DNA of 55,912 bases from Kudoa neothunni (Eukaryota; Animalia; Cnidaria), in contig OZ199838.1 in assembly GCA_964304625.1 (NCBI GenBank), forward strand, positions 798,681 through 854,592, written 5' to 3'. The stretch's first letter is position 1; each line of letters opens with the position of its first letter. The notes under the pieces are model-generated. The model ran no database searches. It worked only from the letters and a program-made list of their open reading frames with translations, and was not told where the DNA came from. Both the position numbers and the translations under genes were made by a program. Positions 2,978 to 39,480 of this stretch are shown here, in pieces.

Positions 2978-4672
2978 CAATTTAATTTCCGTTAATTTTT
3001 CTTATTATATAAATTGAATACACTCGTATACTCGTATGTTAGATTTAAAATATATTTCTTCTAATAGTGAATTTAATAATTTAACTATTAGGAAAGTCTT
3101 CTTATAATTTTCAATACGTGTTATCTCTATTCCAATATAAAAATATACATTTATGATGGAATTAAATGTATTATTGAAGGTTAAATTACATTCCTCGGTT
3201 TCATTATAGTTTTTTTTAAATTTTACCCTTCTTTTTTCTAATGTTGTAATTTTACTACTCGTTATGAACTTTATGGGTGCTTAATTTTATCTCTTGAGTT
3301 TAAAATTATTAAACCCAACCTGAAAATAAGGTCTTGTGATTGATATATGATAATAAGATAACAAGAAGTTGGTTTTTTATATAATACTTAGCGGAATATT
3401 CCGAGTCAGGTTATTCCAGAGAAAACATGTGAATAATTGATTTTTGACGATTTATTTCAGTATTTTTTTCAATTTTCACTTTAAAAGCTTATTGAACATA
3501 ATCTGTTCCATGGAAAAAGATAGCAGTGATGTCACTCGTTTTAAATGATTCTCAATTATCCCTTTACTTCTAATTTAGTAAATTTCAGGCTTAGCATATC
3601 AAGCCTTCGCTATGTAGTGATATTATTTATTTGTTCATGATTATTTTTATAATTTCATCTAATTAGCAAATATTGTAATTTTTAAATAAACGACCCATTC
3701 TAGATTCAAGGAATTTATACCAATTTCCTTGATTAATAATTATACTTAAAATTGGATATAGAAGAACCTACTATTTAATTATGTCTAGACGGATATTCAG
3801 GAAGCCATACAACCGTTATAATAAAACTTTCGATAAAATTAATAAATTTTATTATAAATACATCTAGATTGATATGTGAGGATAAATTACAAACATATTT
3901 TTCATAATTACTATCATTTTTTTCGCTAGTTACGAGAAATGACATATTGAGACGATTAACTTACTTTAAAATGATAAAATTAATTATGTTCCAAAAAGTA
4001 TAATTCATAATGGAATACAAGTGCCAAACGAATTTTTTACAAAGTTATTATTTATTAATAAAAAAATAATTTCCTAAATTTATATAATCCAATTATCTAT
4101 TTTCAATGTTAGTAATAATAAAATATGCCGTACATTAGTTGTATGAAGAAATTAATCCTTTCTGGGTTAATATGGAATTATTTGCGATCCCATAATAGAA
4201 TATTTTCTCATTCACACGTATAATAATTTGAATTTATGTTTGTTTCATAATATTTTAAATTTTTTTATCACAGTAATTTTATATTTTTCAAAAAGAATTA
4301 AATAAAGTTAACTTATTATTTCTTGTGTGTCATTGCCAACATATTACGACATAAGATCTAAAAATTTATTAATCCCAGTTTTAATAATTAGAAAACAGTA
4401 TCCTAATTATTGATAACAGAAAAATTCGTTAAGTAATTCTCTTAGGTAAATAATCCTATAATTTTGCGATAATTTTTCAACGATTCTGTGCACATGCGCA
4501 AATATAAATTTAGGTAATATTTCATTAAAATTTTTAATCACAATTCGATTTTTGTAATTGTAACATTGTATATTTTACCTAAAATATTATATACAATAAA
4601 CTTTAAATTAAAATTAGATATTTTCACAAAAATATGAAAGAAAAAACATAATATTAACGTCCTCAAAGAATA

Positions 4673-7600
4673 TTATAGGTTTACTTCGAAATTGTAACTA
4701 TGATCCTTCCTAGAGTATATCCAACGTTTTAGCTGCTTTCTTTTTAAAATCAGAAAGGATCCAATAATCACAATTAGCGCTAATATTATTCCGAGTAGAA
4801 TCCTAATTGATTTGTGAGAATCGTAAAAATAAACATTGTTACTTTATCTCTTCCTTTAATCTAAATTTATGTTATAATAATTCACTAAGAATTCAATAAC
4901 CTTGCCCAGGGATTTGAACTTTTGGCTTCACCTAAAAATGGATATTAAACCAAATATTAATTAAATATATTCTACCCATCATAATTTGAGCTAGTCCGAA
5001 TACGGTTTGATCTTCATTGTAATAAACTGTCAAAAGATAGCTTTGGTTTACGCTCACATTGTGGATGGAAAAACTAATACACCAAGGTAGCTGATTACCA
5101 CAATCATCCTTTGTAGGTTCGAAACATTGTTTTTCTAGGTAAAATTTACCAACAACAATTTTTCTCAATTCCCAAACGCATTTATCATCAGCGGTGGTTT
5201 TAATGTTGGGCGCTACTGCCTTGACCTTAAGTGTGTTTTCATGACGTTCCACCGAAACATTGATAATTTTCGATTTATTTTCTGGTCTTTCCGGTATTTT
5301 TGCTATAAATTTTAAAATTAATTTCATTCGCAAATTTAAAAAAAAACAAATAAAACTCATAATGATGTGAAATTCTTGATAAATTTGAGTTTAACGTGAT
5401 TACTTGGTGGATAATTCGTACAAATTCTTTCCGATATTTCTACATTAGGTGTTACACACATATTGAAATCGTCTAGTTGATTAAATCGATCAATAAATAT
5501 AAATTTTTCACAGGAGATTGACTCTAAACACGATACTAGATTTTCGTTAGCTCCCTCTAGGTTGGTCTCTGATCCCTCGTCGTTTATGGGACTCCCAGGT
5601 TTTATATCTATCGGACAATTATAAATCAAGGTGTATTCTCTTCCTTGTTTAACAAAAACTTCATAATGGCACAATATATTTGTAACATTTCCATATAAAA
5701 AGTTTCCATCTATTTCAATCCTATCGCTGGAATGGTTGTGTTCGAGTTGGAGACCTCCATTAACTATATATAGTAATAATTAACAATTTAATTAATAATT
5801 GTTAAACACATTTTATTATTAAATCCTCGTGCAGAATATTGAACACTAATTTAATTTCATAGTTGACTGTGGGAATAATTCCTGTTATTATACGTTCGTC
5901 GCTACACATATTAGGACAAGAATTATTGGAACAGGAGACTTCATGATAAAGGTGGCTATTCATTAGGCTAACATAGTAAGTACAAAAAGGTGACATCCTA
6001 ATAAATCTTGAAAAGTTTTCAGGTGGTATTATTTTAATATTTTCTTCCGTATCGGTCAACGAAAACTCGAATGGAAATGAAATAATATCACCCTCTTAAT
6101 TATTGATATAAAACAATAGAAATGAATGAATAATAGTTACTTTGTCTGTAATAGAATTTTTCTTCATACTCCGGAAAATCATCAATATCGGAGATCATTG
6201 AAAGTATATAAGGGACTGATAGAATAAATATATCCTGCAATGTAAGTAACGAACAAGAATCATCACAAGTCCGGTCGGACCCACAAAGCACATCATTCGC
6301 ATAATCAGGTTTGATTATATTGGCCTGATAATATCTAAATCGGCATCTATTATATTTTATTTCTTCGTTCGTAGGTTTAAAAAGTGTTGCATCTATAACC
6401 AAACCCTTTTCTTTATTTAATGGTATAATATCATTTGTTTTAGTTAGAATATTACTGAAAACTAAAAAAATTAAAATTGCATTTTTCTCATTAAAAATAC
6501 CAAATTTTGTATCCATATATCCTGAATCTGGATCAGTCAAATCTTGATGTCTTGATTTAATCAATATTTGCACGATAGAATATTTATGTCCTAGTTTTAA
6601 TCGAATATAACGAAATGGGCCGTAACATTCTTTAGAACTATCCGTGCCACATTTTGTATTATATTCCGCGGGGAATGTATTATTCTTAGCGAAATGTCTT
6701 ACGCTGAAATGAAAAATATCTGCGGTAAATGAATTATCGGGTATCATATCGTAGGTATGTTTTCCAGATATAAGTTCATACGTTATTCGAAATTGTGGCT
6801 TGTATATTTCAATATTATTTCGCATATATGAATTGGGTATGTGATATAAAAAAGAAGGAAAAGTTTCACATCTCATTTCAAAATATGTGAGCAACGTATC
6901 GAATGTGACCAGATTTTCTTTATTGTAATGTTCACAATCGATTCCCGCACCTCCATTAGCACAAATGATATTGCCACAATAGATAGGACACGAAAGTGGA
7001 GGGCATGTTTTGGTTTTTAATCGAAGACCTGAATAACTTGACTCTATTGTTATTTCCGGGCTGATAAGTATTGCTAATATAACACATAATGCATATTTCC
7101 ATTTAAATTAGTTACGAGTATGAAATCCGAATACGAATGTTTTGGTTAAACCGGAGGGGGTTGAACTTGTGTATACATAAACAAAGCGTTCTTTTGGTGG
7201 AAAAATATAAAAAGGCAAGTATTCTCCATCCCTGCATTTAAATCTCAAGATGGTTGATTTTTGTTTATCACCAATATCTTTCAGTGCATAGAATGTAGAT
7301 TCGCCTCTTTTAGTTATGATCATTCGACGCAATTCGCAAAATTTTTCTGGATCATCATTATCGTAGATTACAAAGTGTAGAAAATTTTCTTTTTTTATTT
7401 TTTCACCCGCATAAATCAACTCAACCGAATGATCGATTGTATAAGAACCTTTGAAAAGACTGCTCATATCTAAAGCAGAAATGTAAGTTATGAAAATAGA
7501 ACATTTGAAGAATACACAGAAGTAAACCGAAATATTTGGAATATAGTTCCATTGTCTAACACGATAACAATGATAGTTTTGATTTATCAATCTCGTTAAC

Positions 7601-7682
7601 AGTTTGATTAATATTTGTTAATTGGATTAATAATAAAATAATCCAATATAAATATATTAATTAAATTATTAATATCACCCAT
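4673..7682 (-). CDS. Cys-rich type-I membrane protein, paralogue 1 (about 10 exons; 5' end approximate)
   Basis: ORFs 7108-7590, 6100-6894, 5802-6059, 5357-5674 and 4932-5360 are exon pieces homologous to the two downstream copies. Last exon reads ILLGIILALIVIIGSFLIL-KRKQLKRWIYSRKDHSYNFEVNL* (TM plus short tail). A hydrophobic IYLYWIILLLIQL stretch lies near 7620-7660. Confidence 0.85.
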
Positions 7683-8879
7683 GATAAATCGTTCTGATCA
7701 GACAATTTCTACAGCTTCTATGAGTGTGATATTTAAAGTTAAATCATATACTGCCAAATATTTACCTTAAATTAGACATTATTTTGTGATCAATTTATGT
7801 TTAACATAAAATATATTATTTTTAATGATAACAATAATATTAATATTTATATATAAACTTTATTTTGACAAGAAAAAAACATTCAGAAAGAATATTTACG
7901 TATTTCCAAATATTAACAAAATATGTAAATTACTTAATCTTAATAATAATGTGAGAGATTTTTTAGCCAATTTTTATATTGTTTATAATCTAACAATAAT
8001 AGTTGTAAAGATTGTTCTAGTTAATATTCATAACATTATGACTAAAATAGCACAGGTAATCTATTTCGAGATAATAATAGTTTATACATATCTACATAGA
8101 TAATGATGTAATTTACTACTACTACTACCACTACTACTACCTTGGGGATTCTAATAAGATCAATTAATGACCTTTAATTACTACTTTTTGGATCCTTCGG
8201 GTGCTTTATCAATAGTCATATTAGTTATATTTATTCTTTAATATTTTCAATTTAATTTATGTTAACATAATTAAAATTATAAGATAAATTAATATTTATT
8301 GAAATATAATCTTTTAAAAATAATGAAAAATTAAAATATTTAGCAAATCAATTATTAATAATATTTATAGAAAATCAAATAAAATTAAACTACACAATAG
8401 AAGAAACAAGAAACCTCCTATTACGCACATGTATGTCAATGTGTAAACCAGGAATAGCAATTTCACACACTTTTTAAAAACCTACTTATTTAGAATATTG
8501 ATTGGTCATTATTTATATAATGTTTCTTATAATTTTTTAAACAAAATATTTATAAAAATTATTTAAAAAGTTGCGAAATAAAGTAACGATGAGTCACGTG
8601 ATTTGCCAATTTCTTGTACTTCATGTTTATTATTTAGTTAAGTCGATATTTAATGACAAGAAACTTCTATAACTATATCTATTGCCTAATAGTACAATAT
8701 TACTTTATTATTAATTCTTATTTATCATTAATTATTACGAAAGCCACTAAACTAATGACCCAAAAACTGCCTCTGTATCACGTTTAAAATATCTTTTATC
8801 CCGACTCTCCATGACATCGTAGAGATGAAAAATAAAATGATCAAAACCTATAAGTATTTTTATAATCTAAAAATAGAAA

Positions 8880-9220
8880 TTATTTGCATGCAGGGTAATT
8901 TCATTCTGTTGATGACGATATACATATGAGTGGATTGCGTGGGTATGAAGCAAAAAGATTGTGGTAAACGCCGTCAGAATAGTCAATATGAGAAATTAAT
9001 TATTCGATGAAAAGGGTTTACCTTCATGTGCAATTCGTGGTGGGTTTCGTTATTTCAAAAATAGTTCCAACATTTAAAGATAAAATTTTATTAAATATTT
9101 TGCGGGTGCTATTCCTGAAACTATTTCAGAGTGAATCAATCAAAACAGAACATTTTTTAAGACACTGAAAATTTTATTTCCAATGTAGACGAAACTGCCT
9201 TATTCTATCAATAGCAACGA
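8880..9220 (+). mobile_element. pogo/Tigger-like transposase relic
   Basis: Fragments read GGFRYFK (cf. GWFxRFK) and ISNVDETALFYQ (cf. IFNxDETGLFW, first catalytic Asp), with stops and frameshifts. Confidence 0.55.
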
Positions 9221-10659
9221 GGGGAATATTTCACATAATGTTGAAAAATAGTTTTTTGATGTTAAGGGGTTTACCGAGTTTTAATTACCTTTCAAAAATT
9301 ATTATATAGTTAACTGACCTTTTTAAACGCAACTTAATCATTATTAAATGTCAATTTCTTCTGAAATAATTGCGCGCGTACGTGAAATTGGTTCCTTATT
9401 GTATTTTACTAAATAGCCTGTTTTATGTTTAATAATACATTGAAATAACTACATTCAGCTACAAATATTAAATTAATATGATCTAATACAATTTCTAACT
9501 TTTAATCGTATAATCGTCTAATCTCTAAGTTGAGATAAAATTTCGTTATATTTTAAAAATTAAAAATTTGAAGTTATCTATAGAGATGATCGTTTAATAC
9601 GGTTTAAATAAATTATTCACATTTTATTTATTAATTTAAAAAATAAATTCCATTGGATTTAATATTTTAAGTGTATCGATTTAAAACTGGATAAAATTCG
9701 CAAAGGCATTATAACAATCAATCCATTCATTGATATATCAGTGTTATTTGTTAAAAAATTCACCCTTCGACATTCCCAATATGGCATGATCTATTTTCCT
9801 GTGAAACACACTGCAGAAAATATAAATAAAACCTACACGGACTTTTGTAGTAAATTTCCACTTAACAATCATGATCCAAGAATTTTTTGTGACTCTGCAA
9901 CAAACAATCTATCAAGTCTAAGAGAGTTCAACACAATCAGGTGTACTTCTCGTCGCCTTCGCATTATTATATCTCAAGTTATTTTATGTAATAAATTTAT
10001 GTAAAAATTTTTGCATGTAATCACTTTTGAAAAAAAATTTAGAATTAATACCAAAGATCCCTGAATCTTCGAAAAGTCACCAATATGTTTTGAACTTGAT
10101 AGTGACTCAGAAGATTTTCGATCAGAAATTCAACTGTACGCCCAAGAAAAAGTCAACCAGCATCCAATTCAATGTCAGAGAGGGTGTTTTCATATGCTGG
10201 AAAAATGTTATCCAAATCTAGATATAGACTTGATCCAAACACATTAAGAAAATATATAGTCTACACTAATACTATTAAAAATAAGACATTTTTGGAGTAA
10301 AATTAACTCACTCCTCTCCATTATGTGTTATTTGTCATGATCTCAAAAACTAACTGAACAGACCTAACTTAGCCACTTAAAATTCACTTCTAATTATTAG
10401 ACTTATAGAATTAGGGTTTGAAAGTATTTTTATCATTCTATAAAACGTCTAGATAAATTTGACTATAGCATTACTTAATATAGCGATCATCTGTTTTGTA
10501 AATAGAGGTAATTATCTCTGAAAAAAGAACACTGAGATCAAATTTTTATTTGGTATTAAAATAAGAAATTATGGCATATGAGGTAACATACCTCAAAAAA
10601 TTTATAGATCAAGATAATGATCGTAATTGTTTATATACAATGCGTCATACTTTTTTTCT

Positions 10660-12140
10660 CAAAATTTTATATTAACTTCATATCTAAGACCATTTTGGTA
10701 ATTGCAAAGTATGTGGTGACACTTAAAAACGCCCTTTTGCGCATGTTTTTCGAATTTCTATTTTTCACGATTGTCCATAATAAAATAAAAGAATAAGGAG
10801 AAAAAAATTAGCCTAAAATAACAACCTCAAAATTTTCAGAATTTTTCATCCGAACGCGATCGGATACACGTGTAATCTCCATCTTTTTTTCAACAAACAT
10901 AGAATTTCTCTCTAATTTGTTTTGATATCCACTCATAAGTTGGTTATTTATCATATTATCTAGCATATAAACATAAATTTTACAATATCAGATTTATCTA
11001 TACATGTTTTAATTGGTTATAATTATGAATAGTTTAAAAACGAGGACAACCACGTATTCTCAAAATGCATTTTCTTAATTTTCTTAGAACTGTTGAGTTT
11101 TTTTTTTAATAATACATCAAAATTACATTTTAGATAAACATTTAATTTCCATAGGTAAGTAAATTAAGGTTGATTACACGAAGTTATTATTTTATAGGAA
11201 ATTTTCTTAGGTTTGTGTTTAGTATAATATTCGATTGACGTAAAAATGTTGTTATTTCAATATATTTATTAGTTTTAGTCATGTATATATATACACCGAT
11301 AAGAATAATAACCTTAGTTAATATATTGTATTTTTGTACTGTAATATTCTTAATTCATATATTTGGGAAATTTTTTTATTACTACATTTTGACATATATA
11401 AAAACTTACAAAACAATACAAATATACCTTAACATTTTTTCCTTAATATTTTCAAATATTACAATTTTAAAAAATTTAGTTTCCGAATTTTAATAATAAA
11501 ACTTAAATAAATTCTCAATTTTTAATAAAAAATTTACTTAAAAAAATTATAAACTAAAACTAATTGTAAAACATCAACATATATTTTTAAAAATTTAAAA
11601 AGTATTTTCATTATAGAGAAAAATGAGATTTTTTGGTGAAACACGCCATAAGTTTGTTCTTAAAGTTAGTCCATATCAAATTGTTATATATCAACAGTTA
11701 AAAATCTAAATAGTAATAATAAATAACTTTGTAGTTAACAACTAAAAAAACGAATAAATTCAATGTTGTTGAAAAAAAGATGGAGATTACACGTGTATCC
11801 GATCGCGTTCGGGTGAAAAATTCGGAAAATTTTGAAGTTATTATTTTAAGCTAAATTTTTATTCACCTTATTCTTCTATTTTATTATGGACAATCGTGAA
11901 AAATAGAAATTCGAAAAACATGCGCAAAAGGGAGTTTTTAGGTGTTGCTGTGGCCTATCCATATCTTAACAGTAGTGCGTAATCGTGCGCCGGCGCTATG
12001 ATCCACAGTCAGCTAATAAGGTCCCGCCACTTTTAGCTTTGAAGGTCATGGGTTCAGTGCTCGTCTCCGACTTCACATACTTTACCACTATCCTCGCACA
12101 CGACACTCACAAATGGTTTCGTTCGTGGTTATAAATATGA
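10660..12140. mobile_element. Non-autonomous foldback/MITE-like element with long inverted repeats
   Basis: 10718-10905 is a close reverse complement of 11757-11946 (shared core cgaacgcgatcggatacacgtgtaatctccatcttttttt). Weaker symmetry extends outward (aaagtatgtg/cacatacttt; cttcatat/atatgaag). The centre is very AT-rich. Confidence 0.8.
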
Positions 12141-13614
12141 AGAAAACTCCGGATTCCCACCCAATTTTTGAGATTTAAATAAATATTTCTACTAAAATTT
12201 AATTGAAAAAGGCCGTATTATTTAAAAGTAAAGCAAATATAATTAAAATGAATATAATTGATAATAAATTGAATGTTTTGACTTTCTTATTGTTTTTAAA
12301 CAATAATTATGTCAAAACGAGACTCTTTATTAACCCAAGATATGCATAAATCATAATTTATGAAGGAACAAATATATACGAATAGTTACGCTTTCGCGGG
12401 AGGTTATTTTTTTGCAGTCATTTGTTTTTGGTATAAATTTAAAAATCGAATGTGAAAATAAACATTAAACTTATTCTCGAGTGTAAGGTTTTAGTTTTTA
12501 TAATTTTTGAGTGCCTATTTATTCTAATGTGAAATGTAAAAATCTAAAATTATTAAACAAGCAATAAAAAACATGATCTTAAATACTAATTAAAGTATAA
12601 TTCTTATTCGAATTATAGTTTACTTAAACAATATGAAACACAATTTTTAAGAATCCAACCGATTCTTAATGAAGATTTTATAATTTGTTGATCAAACATA
12701 TTGCAGCCTTGATTTGGCACGAATCACACATGATATATTTTGAGCTAGATTCTTATTACTCAGGATCGGTTAATTACTTTTAAAAAATGCTTGGCTATAG
12801 AATTTTTTCGCTGACTCAATGTGTGAGTCATCGACCCCTAGTTACTGTCTCTCCCACCCTTTAGAGGTCCAAGAAGCTGTTTTAAACCAATATATTCACC
12901 CAGGTAAATGTATAATTAAACAAACAATTTAATAATTTATTTATAAAATTAAATATAGTGTATCTTAAAAAGAAAATTTGTTAACCAACAAAATCTGCCT
13001 TCAGAAAATAATTTTCAAATTATCTCTATTTCCCTATTCTAAATTAGTCTTATTTTTATACTTCTTTGCTGATTTGTATCATTAATCGTACACTATCTAC
13101 ATCACACCAAAAACGTAATATTTTATGCATATATTTTTGTTATTTTGGCTATTTATTTCCTATAATAAATATACATTTGTTTTATTTAATTTATGGCAGA
13201 AACAAAACTCAGTTAAAATGTATTCGGAAATAATAATCTTCGAATAAAATTAAATAAGATCAGTTATCATACATAAAAACGTATCACAATTAATAATAAT
13301 TCTATTAATTAGTTTTAATTCTAGATTATTTATAATATATTTTAAAAAGAATCATAAGAATTCCAATTTAAAATTTTTTAAACTACTTTATGCAAAAAAT
13401 TAACTTTTTTGTATACATAATACACTAAAAGCTTGATTACTCCCTTTTTATTACAATATAGAAAATAAGTTAAAAAAATATTTACTCAGAGAGAAAAGAT
13501 AACGATATACTAATAAATAAATATTCTCAATTGCTGCGAAGGGAGTCACAGTATTGAACAACATCTCACTAAATCATTTTAAAAATTCGTTAATGGTTTT
13601 GTTAGTAATATTAT

Positions 13615-16488
13615 TTATAGTTCGGCTTCAAATAGATAGTCGTGGTTTTTCCTTGATGTTATCCATCGTTTGATTGACTTGCGCCAAATTATTAGGGCCA
13701 AAACAAGTATCACTACTGGAACACACACGCCAATGATGATCCTTTAAAATATTGTTAAAAAAATAAAAACATCCCTTTACTTGATATATAATTTATTACT
13801 AAAAATAAAATAAACTTTGGTCATAAAAAATTATACTACCTATTCCATGGATCTATGCTTTCAGTTGCACCTAAATTAATTTCGGTTTATCAATCGAATA
13901 ATTAAATGAACTAACCTTGTTCAATTTTGGCTACTCCAAATTTATTTTTGTCATCATTGTAATAAACTGTCAAGAGATAGCTGTAATTTGTGTTTATGTC
14001 CATAATAGAAAAATCCAAGCATTTAGGAAGCTCAGAATCACAATCATCCTTATGCGCTTCGTAGCATTTTTTTTCCAGAGGATATTTACCCAAAACTATT
14101 TTTCTTAATTCCCAAAGACATTTTGACTCGGGATCACCAATTCCTTGAGGAAGAACAGCGATGACTTTGAATAAATTTTTGTAAAGTTGGAATGAAACAT
14201 TAATAATTTCGGACGCTTTATTCGGTCTATCTGGTATTTTAACTAAATAAGTTAAACATAATAAAACAAGGTTGGTCCAAAATTACGTGTTGGAAATATT
14301 TTGCATTTCTTTTCAGATATTTTTAAGTTAGGTTTCACACAGACAAGATACTCCTTGGTTTGGATGTATTGACCGGTAAACGAATATTCTTCGCATGAGA
14401 AAGGAGCATTACAATGTTCCACCATCTTGTTTGGTCCTAATTAAACACAATGAGGTCTCTCTTCATAATTTTGAACATATTTGGATACCAGCAGGTGAAC
14501 AATCGTAAATCAAATTGAAATTTCTGAATTCTCTAGCAAAAACTTCATAATGACACAATACATTGGAAGCTTGTTCATAAGGAAAATATCCGGCTATTAC
14601 AATGCCCTTATTCTTGTGGATGTAATTCAATTGCAGAGCTCCATTAACTAATAATGATTATAAATCAATTATTAGAATTTAAATATTAATAAAATACAGT
14701 TTAATATCATATCCTCATGTAGAATATTGAAAACTAACTTTATTTCATAATTTGCTGTAGGAGTGATCCCCGTAATTATACGTTCATCATCACACATATT
14801 GGGACAAGAGTTATTCACACAGGTTGCTTCATAAAAAAGTTTGCTTCTCATAAGGCTGATATAGTATGTACAAAAGGGGGACATTTTAATCAATCTTGAA
14901 AAATTTTTAGGAGGTTTTATATGTATATTTCCTTCCAAAAAGGATATCTTGAACGGCGATGATAGTTCTAAGCCCTCTAAAAATTCACCTTATTCACATA
15001 ACTGAAAAAAGTTGACAATTACTTTGTTTAAAAAATATCTTTTCCTCATACGGCAGAAAATTATTTATATCAGATTGCATTGAGAATATATAAGGGACAG
15101 ATACAATAAAGGTATCCTCTAATGTCAAAAGAGAACAAGTATCATCACAAGTTTGTCCAGAGCCACATAATGCTTGATTTAATTTGGTCGGTTTGGGCAA
15201 ATTTGCTTGATAATATGTAATATTGCAAGTTTTGTATTTTACCCCTTCTTTAATGGGTTTAAAGTATGTTAAATTCAAAACAACGCTTGAATTATTAGTA
15301 GATGGAAAAAGGGCATTTCCAAAGGTTGCCAAGTTACTAAATACTTCAATACATTAAATTTTATAGTATTATCGTAAAGTACCATATTTTGTATTCATAT
15401 ATCCAGAATTGTGATTATTGATAACATGAAATCTGTTTTTTATCAATATTTGAACGACGGAATATTTATGTTGTAGGTTCAATTGAATATATCGACAAGG
15501 ACCATAACACTCGCTTGGTTTGGTCCTTCCACAATGTGTGTTATAGCCTACGGGGTATTCATTTAGCCTAGTCATTGGCCTTATACTGAAATGACAAATA
15601 TTTGCGGTGAACGCATTGTCGAATATAACATGATAAGTGTGCTCTCCAGATAAAAAATTATAGTTTACATGATACTGTGGCTTATATATCTCGAAAGTGT
15701 CTCGCATATATGAATTAGGAGAATGATAGAAAAAAGAAGGATAATTGTCACATTTCATTTCGTATGATATCATTGGATTAAATGAAACAATATTGTCTCT
15801 ATTGGTCATGTCACAAATGCTTGCAGGAGTGCCTTTGTTACATATTTTTCCACCACAATAAATAGGACATGGAACCGGAGGACAAGTTTTTGTATTGAAC
15901 TCAAGACCATTATAATCCCCTTCGATTGTTACTTCTGGGTTATTCAACAGCGCTATATATTTTTTAACTTTTGATTTTAAATTACACTCAGCTTACGGAT
16001 ATGAAGACCAAATACGATTGGATTATGAAAACTATGTAGGTTTGGCCCGGTAAGTGCCATGATGTAATGGTCTCTTGGAGAGATGTTATAGTATGGTATG
16101 TTTACAGCAGTTTTACAAACAGATGTGAATATATCTCCTTGCCATGCGTTCCAAAGTCTCTTCCATGTATAATGTTGGGTGCCGAGCCTTTTAGTTACTC
16201 TAAGTTTCTTTAGTTTGCAATATTTATTTAAATCGTTAGAATCCTTGAGCATGATTTGTACCCTAACATGCTTTTCTTTTTTTATTCTAACAATAGTGTA
16301 GGTGAGATTGATAGGTGGTTCAGCTGAATTAATGCAGTAACAATCATTGCTTAAATCTATATCCAACATAATAAAGTTGATTAAAACCATATAAAATAAC
16401 TACATAAAAGAATAACATAATGTATGACGCTTTGAGTTGATAGAAGCCCCATTTCGAATCACAATCACAATAATAATCAATAATTCAT
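13615..16488 (-). CDS. Cys-rich type-I membrane protein, paralogue 2 (possible lesions)
   Basis: ORFs 15977-16390, 15369-15947, 14994-15332, 14672-14938 and 13911-14093 are homologous exons. Signal-like LLIIIVIVIRNGAS lies 1 nt out of frame with the ATG at 16488. Last exon reads IIIGVCVPVVILVLALIIW-RKSIKRWITSRKNHDYLFEAEL*. A frameshift plus a TAA occur near 14440-14490. Confidence 0.85.
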
Positions 16489-16957
16489 ATTAACAATCTT
16501 ATTATATCCTTCAGAAATCCAATAAAGTGTATTTTCTTGATAACATAAAATTAGTAATAATATTATATACTTTTGAAATAATATCCAACTATTTATTTTT
16601 ATTAAGGTTAAGCTTTAGGAATTTTTAGTGAGAGATTGAACCAAAAAATAACGCGATATTGCAATATTGCTTATTTCTTTGGAATTTTAAATATTCAAGA
16701 AAATATTTTTATAGGATTATCAACTATTCCTTTGATTGTTCCGCCTACTTAATAATAATTATTCAATTAAAATAAGGCACTGGCTATCGACATGAAAGTT
16801 TTTATTCCAACCTGGCAAGTACACTTGCGTAGAACCTATTTTTAATCATGGAAACTCCTATTAATAGTTGACAAATAAAGTTTATTTTGTATGATCCTCT
16901 GTATTTAATTATATCATATCAATTTGGATATTGTGATGTGTGCTAATAACCACTTCC

Positions 16958-19900
16958 TTAACCCTCCAAACGTCTCTGGGATCAATATGATCCCAGGCGG
17001 CATTCAGTCGTATTTTAAACTAGCTTAGAATTCAAATATAGACTTAAACCTTTGGCTATTTTCCTAAAAAATCTTGTTCCTAATAAATTAAAGGTTCTGA
17101 ATGTTGTTTGGAAATAAATAAGTTTTGCAAAAAAAATATTAACATCCCGACTCATTTGGGGTCAATATGACCTTAGTCATTTTTCTCTAAAAACTATTTA
17201 TTCCTTTCTAAACTATAGATTAAATACTTTTAGAAAATTCCATTAATTGAAAATGTAATTTTGTTAAATTAACAGGGAGAAAAACTAAAAAATACTTTCC
17301 CGATGTTGACCGATAATTGCTGATGGGGTAAATTTTTAACGATGAGCGATTTTTTGTCAAATGATGATATTAAGGTTAATGAATGTGATGACGAAATTCA
17401 ATAATTTAATTTTACATCTGAATATCATTTGTATAACGATGAAATTACTGAAAATTTCTATATTGATAAAAATGGATATAAATCGTCGTTTGAAAAGCCT
17501 AGAATAGCGGAATCCAAAATTAATACTCCATTATATCCCAAACAAGTGTCTAATGATATACAAATCGATGAGCTACAGCTGTTTTCTACAATATGATTGA
17601 TGTTAGCTCAAGCAACAAATTTCACATTTACAAGAATATTTTCTCAGATTTATTCTTCTCCAAATTCAAATTTTTGGAACAGTAAGCTGATAGTCTAGTT
17701 AAAAATGATATTCTTGATTACATTTGTATATCGAGCGCCAGAAAATCGACTCTACGCATTCCTACTTTTGGGATCCAATGGACCCCACATTTTTTAGCTT
17801 GAATTATGGATAAAAATGGTAAAAGTAATTTAGTAAAATATTGGAAAACGTTACAATTATAACACCACCTGTTTTTAACGATGATTACAGAAACATTTAA
17901 AAGGTTAAACTAATCATCAAATTAAACGAGTTTAGCCTCTTTTTTAATATAACGGGTTTTAATAAAAAATATATATCATTCCTCATTGAATAGATCATAA
18001 AAATTGTTCTCTTCGTAATTAACTTCTTAATAATCACGCCCAATAACACCCGTAATACATATTGCTCCAACATATATAAGATGCGAGATACTTATATTGT
18101 TTTGGTTTGTGATATTACAAAATATCATACCAACAACTTTTGAATTTCTTTCATTACAGATGATTCTACAAACAAAAAATCCTCGCTTTTCTGTCTCGAG
18201 ATCTCGATCAATAACAGCATTATTCACGACAAACTAATTCTATCATGCAATTATAATTTTTATCAACGCTATTTTTGTTTATCTGAACATAATCCTTCGC
18301 CAAACCATCTTCAAGCTCTTCTAGAAACTTTTCTCTTGAATAATTGAAATCATAGAATACAGTCATATAGATAAAATGAATTAACCAAGCTAATACCAAC
18401 CATAATGAATAATACTGCTATCGACCATTGAATCGTTCACTTTCTTCATTCGTTGTAGCAATAATATGATCCACTGTTTACACTCCTCCTTTTTAACAAT
18501 TATATTCCAGGTTAACAACAGGTTTTGTTAATCTGTATTTTCAACATTTGTAATGAATTGGAGGTTGTTAGTAATAAAATTGCTCTGCCTTTTATAGGAA
18601 CATACGAGATTAGTATTAGTTTTTGATTAACTTCCTAAAGTGGCTAAAAAACAATCTTCGGGGGGGGGGGGGGGTTAAACAAAAATGTACTGAAACTTCC
18701 CGATTTGAATTCTTTTTTAGATAATTTGTAATATCTCTTTTATTATTTCGTATTATTTCAATCATTCCTCATGTAAGAGTTTTTGAGCAATGGAAACAGA
18801 AGTAAAGAAATTTTCACAAATGATATTTCTCCCACTTTCCATGAATGATGACACTGGATCTATAATAATATCTCCTCAACATATTCAGACATTTCATTAT
18901 AATTTTTATCCAAATACAAAGGAATGTTATGAGTGTACTTGGTCTCGGGATTGGTAAGGAGGAAATACTTAATTCGGTATACTGCCGGCATGGGCGGTAT
19001 ATACATATATAGCGCGGAGATAAATTTTCCTTTAAACAAAATAGCTGCTCGTCAATCGTCAATAGTCAAATTCTCCTGGGGTAAAAAAGTTCGGAACGAC
19101 AATCTTTCCAACCTTTAAAAATATTACAAACGGGAAAGAATTTATTCATGATTCCTCAAGCTTCTCTGGTTTTGAATTTTTCTTAATATGTGGCCATTGA
19201 AATTTGAATAAACCTGTTTAATAGCATAATCTTTCGAAAAATATCCCTTCGATTTCAACACTCCAAAGCAATTTGGATTTTTCTAATTAAGATTTAAAAA
19301 TGGGAATACAATTATGTATTCCCAAATTAGCTAATAATCTTGTTTTGAAATGTCTTCAAATAATTCTGATGATTAAAATTGATAATCGTGTTAATGTTTG
19401 AAATAACACTTGAGAAAATCGATTCACCATAAAATATGAGGAACGATTAGCTAAAAAGGTGACTCTGTTTGAAACATAATAAATTGAACCTGGATATTTT
19501 GGAAACTATTTCGTTTAAAGCTATTAGTTATTTGAAGTTTCTCAGAAAACCAAATAACATCATTCTTATCTTCAGAAACATTAGAATGACATAAATATCT
19601 AAATTATCAAAAGATATCGTAAAATTCATACCAAATATTACACTCAGAATCATTTATGTGACTGCGTTTGACTCTCTGGTGATGATCGGTACCTAACGTA
19701 TGATTGGTTTTTTCAATTTTTCTCTGTTTTTTCACGGTAAAATTTTATTTAATTCTCAAAACTATTGTAAATTATTTTTCTTTGTTGTTTGATAGAAAAA
19801 AATGTGGTGTCTATCAGAACCCAAAAGAAGGAATGTGTAAGTATCAAGATTATTTCGTTACCTGAACGTACAAATCAAAATTTTCTGTTACATTTTAATA

Positions 19901-20576
19901 GAACCAATATCTTTATGAAAATATGTGTGTTCTTAAATCGAATGATGTAATATAAGATTCAATAAGATTAATTCTAACATACATTGGGGTCCAATGGAAC
20001 CCAACGAAGCTCGGAAGGCCAAATACAATTAAGTTGATCAAAACGTTGGGACTATGGAGCCTCGTTCTACGTTCTAGTAGGAAAAGATGTTATCTGTTTG
20101 ACTATGTTCATGACAAAAAAAATAAAATCATTCGGTTCGAATGGAAAATTACATTGGGAAACCCAGTCAAAACATACCTTCTCAAAATTCTCCAAATAAA
20201 TCAATTATTACGTTTAAAAAAATATATTAAATTCTTCATTTTTCGTTATAGATGATTAATTTTTTCAACTCTAAAAATATATCTTATTTTATTTTAATCC
20301 AATATTTAAAACTTCATATATAAGAATAGTCATACGACTCAAATTAGTCAAATAATAATATATACACACAATTTTTTGATTTCGGCGTTATTCGTACAAC
20401 CTCGCGGGAGCTATTTTTGGTCATTACTCCCAAGTTAATGATTAGATTTAAGTTTAGTCCCCATAAAATGTCATAAAATATTTTATTATATCATTATTGG
20501 AAAAAAATATCTGGGGTCATATTGACTCCAAAAGAAGGAGAGTGTATTGTCGGTTTTGTGGCGCCGGAAAAATTAA
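16958..20576 (+). mobile_element. Decayed piggyBac element (outer), interrupted by a second piggyBac
   Basis: Left end TTAA-ccctccaaacgtctctgggatcaatatgatcccag; right end ctggggtcatattgactcc...ggcgccggaaaaa-TTAA. Both ends are homologous to those of the 25086-27205 element. Acidic N-terminal relic at ~17330-17560 and RKRCYL relic at ~20080. Confidence 0.7.
17725..20022 (-). mobile_element. Nested decayed piggyBac with transposase pseudogene
   Basis: ENLTIDEQLF catalytic motif at ~19040-19075, followed by frameshifted YIPPMPAVYRIKYF (cf. YxPxKPxKYGIK). Ends are cgagcgcc...gggatccaatggacccc (17730-17786) and ggggtccaatggaaccc-aacgaagctcggaagg (19986-20018). Confidence 0.75.
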
Positions 20577-20975
20577 AGTAAGTCAGGAGATTAAAATAAC
20601 AAATAAATTGTTAAATATTTAGTTTATTAATATCATCCGAATATTATACTCAGAATTCTAATTTAATTCGTCATAATTGAAAAAATTTTACGATGTTTAT
20701 TATATTGAAATATTTCGTTTTCACCAATTAGAATTTTTATTTGCATAATTATAACCTCATAAAATATGTCGTATGCTGTGCCGTAAGGACGTAGAACAAA
20801 TAATAACAGAAAATAATTATATCTGAGAAGGAATGGTCAGTATTTGTCCACTATTCCCAAATAGTTAATATATTAGGAAAAGGATGTCCAAAGAAAATAT
20901 TTGAGAGTAGATTGAATCCTTAATTAATAAAAACTTAATATATTAGGCTTCTACAAATCTTAATTATAGTTACTT

Positions 20976-23875
20976 TTAAAGATTGGCATTGAATTTTTCC
21001 GAATGTGTTAAGGCGAAAATCGCGGGATATTTCTTTTTTAGACCCCAAATTCCAACACCCAAAACAGCCAGAGTCACTACTGCAGCAGTCACTGAGATAG
21101 ATATAATCCTAAAAATGTAATTATAATAAAAATAACCAACAATTACTTTATATTTTTATTAGACCTAAAATCATTAAATGTATCTGGAAAAATTTAATAA
21201 AAGTTACAAAGTAAAGCTGGAGATTTCATTTTCACCTGAATCAATTACTTTAATTTGTTAAGAAATTAATAATATATTAACTTTTATTTATGTTTGCGTT
21301 GCCAAACACGGTTTGGTCATCATTATAATAAACTGTGAGCACGTAATCATCAGTGTCATCGACATTTTCGATTGTGAACTTATTGCATAAAGGAAGCTCT
21401 GACCCACAATCATTTTTATTTGCAATGAAGCAACGTTTTGCAGACACAAACTTGCCGGAAATTATTTTTCTTAATTCCCAAACACACCTCGAATTATCAT
21501 TTTTCAACTGATTGGGCAGTTCAGTTTCCACATTTAGTTTGTCGTCAACACGTACAATTGAAACTTTCATTCTTTTTTCTCGTTCATCGGGATATTCTTT
21601 TATTTTGGCTGATTTTATATAAACATTTTATATTATATAAAAAGAAAAATTTTATTATTTAAAAATAATATTTTTAAATAATAGTATTATATGTTTAGGA
21701 AATATTCATTAAAATTACCAGGATGAATTGTAATGCAATTGTCCAAGGATGGGCTATTTTGATCGATTTGATAAGTTGCACATACAATATACTCTTTGAA
21801 TTCAGCATTTTCGTCTGTGAAATCAAATCTCTCACACGGAACCTGAGGCGGACATGTTTCTCCTGTGCTCGATCTCGCATCCAAATTGATCTGATCGGGA
21901 TCGCTGACCACGCCATTATTTGTTTTATCGGCTGAACAACCATAAATTATATCGTGTGTGTGATATTTTCTGGATTTAACATAAAAACGACATTGCATAC
22001 TACTCTCGTCAGCATAGAGAAAGGTTCCTTTAATTTCAACTCCTTCCTCTGTATAAGTGTAATCAAGCTGGATAGCTCCACTGACTATTAGAAAGAAATA
22101 TAAGAATTTAATTAAATTTGGAAAGATAAAAATATAATTTACAGTTTAAAGACAAATCACTGTATAGTTGGTTGAAAACAAGCTTAATTTCATAATTTAA
22201 AATAGGAATAATTCCCGCAATTTCACGTTCCGCATTGCACATTGCAGGACAGGCTCCACTTTCACATGATGGCTCATAGAATAGGTTGGTGTTTTGGATA
22301 CTTACATAATACACACAATAATCTGGCAAACTTCCCTGACCCATTGATGATATTTTTGGTTTAAGATGCAATGTACTTGATCCTGTATGAGACAAATCTA
22401 GCAATGATGATATCGCCAAACCCCCTTTTATGAAAAACAATTTGCATCTGGAAATTTTTTACAATAGATGAGATATTACCTTTTCGGAAAAATATTTTTT
22501 CTTCATAAATTTCGTAATTATCTATATTTGATTGCATCACTATTATATAAGGATATCCAGCAATAAATGAATGAAACAACACTAGCCGTGAACAAGAGTT
22601 ATCGCACACATCTCCAGTTCCGCAACGTAAGGTGCTCAATTCTTTTGGTATAGGAGCGTCAGCCAAATAATATTTAAATTCACAATTGTTATATTTAGTT
22701 GGTTGGTCGTTGTCCTTAAAAAGTGATGCATCAAGCGTAAATCCCATATCACTATCTCCAGATATCAAACCATTAGAATCTTCTGGATAATTATTCAAAA
22801 CTAAAAAAAATTGACAAATGTTTCTTAAATGAATTAATTATACCATATTTTTTATTTTTATAACCAGAAGTTTCATCACTAAGAATGTGAAATCTATTTC
22901 TTATCAATATCTGAACGACTGAAACTTTTTCCAATAATCGAAGTTGAATATTTCGACAAGGACCATAACACTCTTTTGGATCTGTTGTTTTACCACAGGT
23001 GGTGGTATATGTGTGAACATTTCTATCATCTATTGCAGCTACTTTTCGTATGCTGAAATGACAGATATCTGCTGATATTTGATTTGTGAATCTTAGACTG
23101 TATGTATGCTCCTGCAAAGTCGATTTGTATACCACATCATACTGTGGCATATAAATCTCAATATTCTCTCTCATATACTTGTTTGGTATATAATAGAATA
23201 TATATGGCAGACCTGAACATCTTATTTGGAAATATGATGTCAACGTTCTGAATGAAACATAATATGGATTTCCTGTGATACATTCGTTATAATTAGTTGT
23301 TCCATAGTTGCAGAATTTGTCTCCACAATAAATAGTGCAACCAGGCATTCTATTCTTATACATATAAAATACAAGATTTCTGTAGGTATCGGTCACATCA
23401 ATATTCACTACTGGAACTCTTAATTGTGCTAAACAATAAAGGTACATATCGTCATAGATGAAAGCTTAAAAATACGTATTTGTAGACCATACACTTTTTT
23501 ATTTACTGCACTTGATACTCTGTAGTTTCTTGCGAATATCATGGTGACATATTTTTGCCTTACAGTAGAAATGTCGTAATTAAACTTTTTGCCATGGGTA
23601 CAGTAGAAGTAGTATGAACTTCCGGTACGAAAATCCTGAGACCATGAATATACCGTACCTGTTTCTCCTTCGGTTTTTATAAATTTGCTCATACGACAAT
23701 GTAACGATGCAGAAGGAGGCGATTCAATTTCCACCATAAATTTGTAGTCACCGCGTTCTTTAATAATTTTATATTTTAGATAAGTTTTAGCCTGTTGTCC
23801 ATCATCATTACACTTGATGGAGACAACCAAAACTACAGCGCAATAAATACAGAAGATAATAAATATTATTTACAT
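20976..23875 (-). CDS. Cys-rich type-I membrane protein, paralogue 3 (TAA at codon 2 as sequenced)
   Basis: ORFs 23429-23830, 22791-23447, 22361-22798, 22108-22440, 21687-21998 and 21277-21570 are homologous exons. Start reads M*IIFIIFCIYCAVVLVVSIKC (signal peptide). Last exon reads IISISVTAAVVTLAVLGVGIWGL-KKKYPAIFALTHSEKFNANL*. Confidence 0.87.
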
Positions 23876-25085
23876 TGCAAAATTGTAAATAATTTGTATA
23901 TATTGATTGGGGAAGATATTATTTGAAAGAAGTTCTCACAAGGTTTAATATTTCTTCCAATCATGTCGAAATCAAGATTAAAACATAAAAGTTAGATCCA
24001 CTTGCTTCTATCTTGTTTGAGTTGCGTTATTAGTGAATTGATACTAAATAGTCTTAGAGCTTTATCTAAAGACACCGATTAGTAATAATTATTGGCGACG
24101 TTTATATTTAAATATGTCATTAATATTTTATAATTAATATAAATAAATATTAAAATTTTAAGTATGATTCAATATTTATATGTAGGCTAATTAGTTATTT
24201 ATAACCATATTGACATGACATTACTTGAATTTTTCCATTTAAAAATTGATGTATTTTAAATTAATAGCAATTCTAACTCATTATTCTATTTATTATTTAT
24301 ATTAGAATTTTTTATTTAGTAATATATTATATAACACATTCTTAATTATCAAAAACAAATATATTTTAATTAAAGTATAATAAAAGGTGGATTATCATTA
24401 TTTTAACGTTCGTTGTTGTTATTATGCCGAATATTTCTATATTAATTGTTATTTTATTTTTATTGCAATGCAATTCCTTATCAAGCGGTACTATGATATG
24501 AAATAAAAATTATTAGGTTTACAGAAGGTGAATCCTAAATTTTAAAGCTATTATTATTAGCATATTTTGATCAAAATAATATCACAATTTATTGTTTATT
24601 TAATCAATTTTATATTCTATCAAAACAAAGTAGTCAATAAAACTCATCCCCCATTGTAACCACGAATATACTCTACACCAGTTATCAGTTATAGGTGTTA
24701 ATAGTTTTATCAATGGATATTTAACATAAAATTATTCATAGAAATAATATATTCAATATTATTTATGGAATATTAAAATCTGAAAATAATTATAAAGAAC
24801 TCAAATTATTTGATTTTTATATCGGCTATTTGGTAGGTTGCGCAAGTATTGTTTCGCACCGGAAAAATAAATCATATTTGATAAAATCAACAACTAACTC
24901 CAATTCTTCCTTCTATTTAGAATAATTCACTGCGATTGCTGTTTAAATTTTTCCGCAGTTATTAATTTCATCAGCTTACGATAATTAATCTTACCTTGTT
25001 AATTTGTTAACTAACGTTGTCATTACATTTAGTGATATAATACCGAAGGAATGCGAAATCCGAGTGATATTCAGGGTTTTTAAAT

Positions 25086-37789: not shown

Positions 37790-39480
37790 CGGTTTCTAAG
37801 CTACATGTTTGACAGTAGCCAATGTTTTTTGGAATCTATGAGACGAGCAAATAGATCTCTGGCAGTTTAATAACGTATTTAGTTGTTTGGTCAGTGTTTC
37901 GCAAACAAATACACATCATGATCTTTTGCACAGACCAATGATATCTGCTGAATTAGACGTTTCCCCATTAACGATACATTTATTAAATAGTTCGAAACTA
38001 TATATTTAAATGCGAGTGATAATGGTTATTGAAAGTGTGACGCAATATAACATTCGGTTTAATTAGTTCAATGCATAACTCTGAGAAAATTTTGACGCCT
38101 GCTACGATCATTGACTCTCCAACCGGGAAACTTCGATGTCCATGTAACGTAGCAATTGAATGCTGTTATATCAACAAGATCCAAGAACATACGAAAAGAC
38201 CATCTCCTCGTTGCTCTTGAACAACTATAAAATTTAGTCATTCGATCTCAATTGTTAACACCGCCCTTCGTTCTATTATATTGTTTAATAATTTCCAGTC
38301 ATTTTCATCCACCTGAATTGATAACATTTTCAGTTATTTCAGTAGATATTAAAAAAAAGCATGATTTATTGATTTATGGATTTATTGATTTATGGATTTA
38401 TTGATTTATGAATTTATGTTGGAGGGCATATGACACCATCGTTATGTTATTATTGAAACAAAAGGTTGACGACAGTTCAACTTGATTTGTCTACTTTAGC
38501 AAATGTTCCCGAACAAATCCATTTCTGCGTACAATAGTTCACGTTAACGTGATATTGTTTTGTAACAAATATGTAGCTAGAGGAACAGTTGTAATAGGGT
38601 TCTCTTTAGTAACACCACCAACCATCTTTCCAGTGTAAGGTTGCATGTTGATCAGATATGATGTACATGCAATATCGGCGGCAACACACAACTCCATCCC
38701 ATAGTGATCTGGTTTGTTCTTGATATAGACTCAGAAAGGACACCATCCTTTCGTTAACAGTAATGTGTGAGCCAAGAGAGTAATTCCGACCTAATGGATT
38801 ATTTATTTGGGTAAATACTTCTCGAATTGGCTCAAATTTATCAGTCGACAAATTAAAACGATCTTGTCTGGTATGTTTATCGTCGAATCGTATTACCCTA
38901 TATATGTGAGTAAACGACTTCGAGGTATGGCCGCCGAGAAGAAATATTGCTCGAAAAGTGGGTTGACGTCCTAAATGTTTTTGAACGACAGTTTTGATCC
39001 TTTACACCTTCCAGTTACAATTAATATTCCCGAAAATGGTTTTATCTCTTCCATCGTTATTTTTTTCATTGTTATATCTTTTATTCGATTCACAAAACTT
39101 ATTGGTGAAGATAAAACCTTCTCAAGGATGGTATCATAAAAAAAGAGACTAAAGCATTCAAGAATGTTTTGGAAATTTGTAGCATCACCTATAGGACCAG
39201 GGTTATTTGTGGCAAAATTGTGTGTTCTAGTTCGTGTCCTTGTTTTATTGGTAAGTTCCCATTGAACTCCTGATTTAGACATAGGCATATCACAAGAATT
39301 TTGAAAATGATGTTCATCGTCGTGCTCAGAATCATAATATGATTCTAACTCTTCTATTATATCTTCATAGTATGACGCATCTGACAATTCACCTTCAAAT
39401 TGTAGATCGCTATCGATAGTTTCACCAATCTCGATAATGTCGTCAATCAATATATTGATATCATTATCAAAAAGCATTTG
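37790..39480 (-). mobile_element. piggyBac transposase pseudogene
   Basis: Acidic N-terminus, then PGPIGDA..ILECFSLFF, DKFEPIREVF and GSHITVNERMVSF; YNRTKGGVN..RATRRWSFRMF at 38190-38280; Cys-rich C-terminus near 37800-37930. Termini not resolved. Confidence 0.9.

Follow-up and report, generated by a model that had tools for sequence, protein, structure and literature searches.

Three divergent cysteine-rich genes of Kudoa neothunni belong to a large, lineage-restricted family with predicted FN3/Ig-like ectodomains

Three intact paralogous genes in tandem

We analyzed a 55,912-nucleotide stretch of the genome of the cnidarian parasite Kudoa neothunni (GenBank assembly GCA_964304625.1, contig OZ199838.1, positions 798,681 to 854,592; hereafter the window, with positions counted from its first letter). 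The window is AT-rich (GC 24-35%) and carries three paralogous genes, all co-oriented on the minus strand, which are one old, divergent clade of a much larger family of predicted single-pass membrane proteins. Exon models were derived by reading the DNA together with a search for frame-consistent GT-AG junctions, and homology and fold searches were run on single exons, or on uninterrupted paralog frames, which occur naturally where introns stay in frame. The three genes share one exon order, comprising a leader, six module exons (D1 to D6), a mini-exon of 28-31 nucleotides (nt) and an exon for the transmembrane helix and tail; the sole difference in layout is an additional 52-nt intron that interrupts D5 of gene 2.

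Gene 1
4673-7552, minus: whole gene, from sequence reading and junction search; candidate ATG 7552-7550, stop codon 4675-4673
7503-7552, minus: putative leader exon, hydrophobic and signal-like; donor at 7516 or 7503, exon end uncertain
7116-7469, minus: D1 exon, membrane-distal module, the most variable in the trio
6501-7073, minus: D2 exon, with motifs CPIYCG, PNSYMR..EIYKPQ and ECYGP..VQILI; homologous to the gene 2 D2 that was modelled as two beta-sandwich subdomains
6141-6461, minus: D3 exon, four Cys; the preceding 39-nt intron happens to be in frame
5810-6094, minus: D4 exon, four Cys; motif CPNMC..ER.I.GI.P..NYEIKLVFN
5404-5763, minus: D5 exon, six Cys
4976-5302, minus: D6 exon, four Cys; motifs CxWELRK and YLLTVYYNED..FG
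4901-4931, minus: mini-exon (stalk), 31 nt; gene 2 has a 31-nt counterpart in which P-W is conserved
4673-4802, minus: exon for the transmembrane helix, the 23-amino-acid basic tail and the stop codon

Gene 2
13615-16418, minus: whole gene, from GT-AG junction search and open exon parts
16418-16388, 16323-15997, 15952-15383 and 15343-15023, minus: putative leader, D1, D2 and D3 exons
14976-14698, 14647-14489, 14436-14287 and 14242-13916, minus: D4, D5a, D5b and D6 exons
13870-13840 and 13741-13615, minus: mini-exon; transmembrane and tail exon

Gene 3
20976-23964, minus: whole gene, from GT-AG junction search and open exon parts
23964-23874, 23832-23476, 23428-22844 and 22800-22480, minus: candidate leader (uncertain), D1, D2 and D3 exons
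22424-22143, 22084-21719 and 21608-21282, minus: D4 (acceptor uncertain), D5 and D6 exons
21235-21208 and 21108-20976, minus: mini-exon of 28 nt; transmembrane and tail exon

Stop-to-stop pieces compared exon by exon with BLASTP showed 25-68% amino-acid identity among the three genes (lowest E-value 4e-78), and DNA-level repetition within the window was confined to the genic segments, with start-to-start distances of 8.9 and 7.4 kb. An earlier note, made from the letters of this DNA, had described three co-oriented tandem paralogs with a common exon structure and six quoted motifs; BLASTP, alignments and exon models confirmed the paralogy, the tandem arrangement was borne out, and all six motifs were found in each gene in translations and alignments. 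Introns between domains were all in phase 1 and 39-110 nt long, compared with a published median of 49 bp for K. neothunni introns (PMC12239612), and the mini-exon switched the phase from 1 to 2 between D6 and the transmembrane exon in three of three genes. The in-frame exon parts contained no stop codons. Each gene encodes 28-31 cysteines (3.6-4.2% of residues), with an even number in each module, and ends in one transmembrane helix followed by a basic tail of 20-23 amino acids, in agreement with the single-pass type I architecture and tail of about 20 residues that had been claimed. These results indicate that all three genes are real and intact.

The 5' ends were less well defined. The description of the N-termini as signal-like holds for gene 1, whose putative leader is hydrophobic, while in all three genes the leader exon comes from modelling and is uncertain. 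For gene 3, the ATG at 23875-23873 that had been taken as the start directly precedes a TAA, and the true first exon must therefore lie upstream; the candidate exon at 23964-23874 fits in phase and is only moderately signal-like. The modelled exons contained 9, 10 and 0 N-x-S/T sequons in genes 1, 2 and 3, respectively. The composition of gene 3 also deviated from the remainder of the D2 alignment.

Family size and genomic distribution

The earlier note had asked for a genome-wide copy search, which we carried out in six frames on the same genome (40,260,978 bases; contigs of 17.15, 12.04 and 11.05 Mb and one of 18,219 bp). With the gene 2 D2 exon as query, at least 150 matches were scored among 350 first-look candidates, all at E ≤ 2e-30 and with 35-54% identity, while the D6 exon of a paralog gave at least 150 scored matches among 300 candidates. 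The family has at least 150 members, and probably more than 300, far above the three genes described in the earlier note. Copies occurred on all three large contigs (C1 to C3), frequently in tandem runs with a spacing of 4-7 kb (for example C2:9.79-9.87 Mb, C1:16.44-16.56 Mb and C3:0.04-0.46 Mb). A large, diversified and clustered gene repertoire, as is characteristic of variant surface antigen systems of the var/VSG/VSP type, was thus found in this genome, in tandem clusters on all three chromosomes.

Identity across family copies ranged from 15 to 98%, and D2 was 15-45% identical between subfamilies. In the D2 tree, the trio formed its own clade on a long branch (support 100/99). The motif of the trio tails had no other occurrence in the genome, and no recognizable tail motif was shared beyond genes 1 and 2. 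In another subfamily only KKKRD follows the transmembrane helix, and tails across the family span 5-23 amino acids.

A separate pattern was seen among the paralogs centered on D6 (L041-L070). In one subfamily, D6 and the transmembrane exon were 80-98% identical across chromosomes and the upstream modules of the same genes 57-77% identical. This would fit either gene conversion or strong constraint on the module next to the membrane.

Predicted fold of the ectodomain

Sequence searches gave little indication of the fold. The 43 D2 sequences had no match in Pfam and the D2 profile had none among Protein Data Bank (PDB) sequences. The Pfam model for the fibronectin type III domain (FN3; fn3, PF00041) scored 23.7 bits against D4 of paralog L031 (cut-off 25, E 5.7e-5) and 17.2 bits against L033, such that the best paralog fell just short of a gathering score that no window exon reached.

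The AlphaFold2 model of gene 2 D2, built with 43 homologs, is all-beta with a predicted local distance difference test score (pLDDT) of 83.3. Foldseek returned no match to this model at E ≤ 1e-3, and its best weak matches were tandem FN3/immunoglobulin (Ig) pairs in IL-17RA, IL-13Ralpha1, GHR, IL-27Ralpha and NCAM (FN3 1-2), with E-values of 1.5e-3 to 1e-2 and TM-scores of 0.24-0.39 for the cytokine-receptor modules. In an exhaustive VIA search the model divided into residues 1-78 and approximately 85-192, both of which matched Ig/FN3-like sandwiches (Z 6-7.4), and an Atlas search concurred, with an IL-17RB cluster at a TM-score of 0.54. D2 is accordingly modelled as two generic Ig-like sandwiches, which may be of the FN3 subtype.

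Two other assignments of D2 or of the ectodomain were rejected. A lectin-like galactose-binding jelly roll of the F5/8 type C (discoidin) kind, guessed from the pattern ECYGP..R.I.L.L....V.ILI..R, was ruled out by the AlphaFold model and the fold searches, whose matches were Ig/FN3-like, and by the absence of a Pfam match to these families, including F5_F8_type_C, in any of the 43 D2 sequences; the sole pointer to it came from weak Atlas language-model neighbours (score ~0.91, 109 shared features, with recognition below the usual level). Cytokine-receptor modules such as those of IL-17RA, IL-13Ralpha1, GHR and IL-27Ralpha likewise consist of tandem Cys-containing FN3-like pairs and head the weak Foldseek list for D2, but their scores reflect generic fold resemblance. 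The WSxWS motif occurred in no exon of the trio, which also lacks Box1/2 and a SEFIR tail, and a class I cytokine receptor homology module was rejected on the absence of WSxWS and on tails of 20-23 amino acids with no recognizable motif.

The FN3 fold itself was modelled in a paralog, L054, whose D5 and D6 are 17-36% identical to those of the window. Its natural open frame across D5-D6 was predicted to form two sandwiches (pLDDT 80-94) with disordered stretches between, and D5 carries a disordered 56-amino-acid insert rich in Pro, Thr, Ser and Ala. Foldseek returned 74 matches to this model at E ≤ 1e-3, with FN3 tandems throughout the best ~50 that were listed, and VIA gave Z 8-9.8 to FN3 domains of fibronectin, collagen XX, CD45, PTPRJ and NCAM. 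Both L054 modules have the features of an FN3 domain, namely a length of ~90-110 amino acids and a beta-sandwich of seven strands that can be superposed on solved FN3 structures. Among the best single-domain matches were CD45 d3-d4 (Z 8.7, root-mean-square deviation 2.1 over 78 residues, 20% identity) and PTPRJ fn3-4 (Z 8.8). These receptor-type tyrosine phosphatases (CD45 d1-d4, CD148/PTPRJ) are likewise type I FN3-like rods with some extra disulfides and mucin-like low-complexity segments; in contrast to them, the Kudoa proteins have no phosphatase or other cytoplasmic domain, only a tail of 5-23 amino acids, and number hundreds of paralogs where vertebrates have single genes, and no sequence homology was detectable between the two.

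Profile-profile comparison matched D3 with D4 (E 2e-4); weaker links, with E-values up to 0.02, joined D6 with D4 and D1 with D6. The four cysteines and an F-strand Tyr motif coincided in these alignments. The models and fold searches together predict a rod-shaped ectodomain of some seven FN3/Ig-like modules, divergent and stapled by cysteines, and the ectodomain, which had been described as unrecognised, can now be assigned to a known fold. An FN3 module can evidently drift below Pfam detection yet retain its four-Cys staple and its phase-1 exon borders.

Distribution outside the genome and annotation

An exhaustive search of 1.84 billion protein representatives with a hidden Markov model of D2 returned 18 matches, and the 10 that were looked up were all unnamed fragments, each a singleton in an ENA or Logan assembly; the contigs inspected as carriers of such matches were unspliced genomic DNA. 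One fragment nested within the K. neothunni family in the D2 tree, and others stood on long branches, presumably coming from related myxozoans. One of the 18 matches, P0013, was discarded as a low-complexity false positive. A 7.3-kb Logan contig from an unrelated public sequencing run (L036, SRR31175926) encodes a distant homolog of ~22% identity, with D1 and D2 exons at 5001-5609 and 4578-4982 and with SNF5 and ribosomal protein S14-family genes as neighbours, and presumably represents another myxozoan hidden in host data.

No family member was found in annotated proteomes within the 1.84 billion proteins, including those of other annotated cnidarians, and the family appears restricted to a narrow lineage. 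The original suggestion of a lineage-specific family is well supported in this respect, given no Pfam or PDB sequence match and so few hits in the protein search. A full-text literature search for FN3 or surface families in Kudoa or myxozoans gave nothing relevant, and the family is apparently undescribed. The published K. neothunni assembly, obtained from yellowfin tuna data, spans 40.2 Mb in three chromosomes with an N50 of 12.0 Mb and a circular mitochondrial genome; its annotation comprises 5,316 predicted proteins, for which repeats were masked first and only protein hints were used, and the genome paper makes no mention of gene families (PMC12239612). A nematode origin of the analyzed genome was also considered and set aside, since no SL1 sequence was detected and the statistics of the genome indicate Kudoa. 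The family may be absent from the 5,316 proteins because repeats were masked before annotation. Several hundred intact genes of ~800 codons would make up a sizeable, and probably missing, share of the proteome of this 'reduced' cnidarian parasite.

The missing annotation would also be accounted for if the copies were largely non-functional repeats, either decaying pseudogenes or a domesticated mobile-element gene. Their number is high enough to be captured by RepeatModeler in a genome masked before annotation, and some copies contain stop codons (~12 of 150 D2 matches and ~25 of 150 D6 matches), although most have no internal stop. We nevertheless consider this explanation highly improbable, as every exon part of the trio is open, the splice phases and mini-exon have been kept despite saturated synonymous divergence, the ratio of nonsynonymous to synonymous divergence (dN/dS) is below 1 in all modules, and the flanking DNA is not co-repeated with the genes. 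Pfam searches also identified no transposase, reverse-transcriptase or viral domains inside the gene units.

Selection and divergence among modules

Among the three genes, dN/dS ranged from 0.13 to 0.6 across modules, values that are rough because dS is ~1-2 and saturated. Together, these values indicate that the genes are old and constrained. D1 had the highest dN and 20-25% identity within the trio, and the least divergence among the compared modules was seen in D4 of the gene 1-gene 2 pair (70% identity). Selection has been purifying on average, with divergence peaking in the membrane-distal D1.

This distribution of divergence bears on whether the proteins could be structural components of the spore, located in the valve surface, the sutures or the polar-capsule apparatus, required in large amounts and amplified for dosage and not for diversity. 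Disulfide-stapled beta-sandwich rods would suit tough extracellular structures, and the high similarity of D6 in some subfamilies (80-98% across dispersed copies) is what dosage amplification or concerted evolution predicts. However, the 15-45% identity of D2 between subfamilies and the focus of divergence in the distal module are not predicted by dosage, and a transmembrane anchor with a minimal tail suits a membrane coat more than a matrix protein. A spore role is therefore quite unlikely in our assessment.

Proposed role at the parasite surface

We propose that each product is a type I membrane glycoprotein of ~800 amino acids with a short hydrophobic leader. The extracellular rod would consist of six exon-defined modules forming ~7 beta-sandwiches, since D2 is modelled as two, most modules having four cysteines and being flanked by phase-1 introns; it would be followed by a 10-amino-acid stalk, one transmembrane helix and a basic tail of 20-23 amino acids with no recognizable signalling domain. 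The proteins would be anchored in the plasma membrane of the parasite, their variable N-terminal modules lying farthest out, and the family, which fills tandem clusters on the arms of three chromosomes, would present the host with a diverse set of coat proteins, adhesins or ligand-binding proteins whose diversity arose by tandem duplication and divergence. As the cytoplasmic part is nearly nil, the proteins may act by binding or shielding and not by signalling of their own. With moderate confidence, we favor this reading of the trio as part of a surface repertoire of membrane-bound proteins for coating, adhesion or ligand binding that tandem duplication has diversified. The functions suggested in the earlier note, variant surface antigens, adhesins or recognition receptors, are plausible.

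Several observations weigh against it. Pfam gave no match to any window exon, and an FN3 nature of the trio's D1, D3 and D4 is suggested by alignment to paralogs and by weak profile-profile similarity. The leader exons are weakly defined in all three genes and especially in gene 3, and saturation makes the selection estimates coarse. Kudoa plasmodia grow within muscle fibres, and it would be unusual for a disulfide-rich ectodomain to be exposed to the host cytosol there. In addition, host RNA-seq contained too few Kudoa reads according to the genome paper (PMC12239612).

The same architecture could serve adhesion or recognition between parasite cells, either among the cell-within-cell plasmodia, sporogonic cells and valve cells or in fusion and self-non-self discrimination between co-infecting plasmodia, by analogy with the Alr genes of Hydractinia and with clustered Dscam and protocadherin genes. 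Single-pass proteins with FN3/Ig arrays represent a classic metazoan adhesion design, the fold searches matched NCAM, DCC, neogenin, sDscam and contactin, and the genes are arranged in tandem clusters with a variable distal module. Yet several hundred copies far exceed the apparent need of a very simple body plan, the near-absent cytoplasmic part (KKKRD in one subfamily) offers no link to cytoskeleton or signalling, and the proteomes annotated for other cnidarians yielded no member of the family. We regard a role in recognition between parasite cells as unlikely.

Like the Kudoa genes, the Hydractinia Alr cluster is a tandem array in a cnidarian and encodes single-pass proteins whose beta-sandwich ectodomains have a hypervariable domain at the distal end. 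Alr proteins, in contrast, have Ig-like ectodomains and long tails with signalling motifs, and are encoded by tens of genes, not hundreds. No sequence similarity between the two was found in the exhaustive search, and Kudoa is an obligate parasite.

Parasite surface families offer a second comparison for the favored host-facing repertoire. Giardia VSP and Plasmodium RIFIN/STEVOR proteins are likewise large, lineage-specific, clustered families of single-pass, Cys-containing proteins with very short tails, but FN3-like modules are unrelated in fold and sequence to CXXC-rich VSPs or to the two-transmembrane RIFIN type. VSP and RIFIN/STEVOR proteins are established as being expressed clonally or exclusively. 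Similar multigene surface families, unrelated to that of Kudoa, have been reported in the myxozoan Sphaerospora molnari (bioRxiv 10.64898/2026.02.11.705288). A stronger version of the comparison, in which FN3-rod coats form a repertoire for antigenic variation or host-ligand mimicry, with one or few of the hundreds expressed at once on Kudoa stages that encounter fish immunity and renewal by gene conversion among tandem copies, is unsupported and seems very doubtful to us; if true, no var/VSG-like system would have been described in a metazoan before it.

Should the proteins indeed be displayed at the surface, they would be obvious candidates for host attachment, immune evasion and host-range determination, as well as candidate diagnostic or vaccine antigens. 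Tuna muscle is spoiled by Kudoa, and food-borne illness has been linked to some species of the genus.

Other features of the window and genome

The spacers between the genes had been described as transposon relics, which could be shown for a single element.

10719-11945, no strand assigned: transposon-like unit of ~1.2 kb in the spacer between genes 1 and 2, with ~180-nt inverted ends at 10719-10896 and 11766-11945 that are 94% complementary
38606-39477, minus: two neighbouring open reading frame fragments with sub-threshold matches to DDE_Tnp_1_7 (E 0.005 and 0.011)
77-209: perfect 63-nt direct repeat at the start of the window, spacing 70 nt

The first of these looks like a non-autonomous DNA transposon and the second is probably a decayed piggyBac-like element, both as judged from their sequence.

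The 18,219-bp contig (C4; L039, L040) has a GC content of 44%, compared with ~28% in nuclear DNA. No tRNA genes and no Rfam matches, including rRNA, were found on it, and long open frames emerge only with TGA as a sense codon. Kudoa mitochondrial genomes have been reported at 15.9-19.4 kb and as extremely divergent, and the contig is consistent with such a mitochondrial genome.

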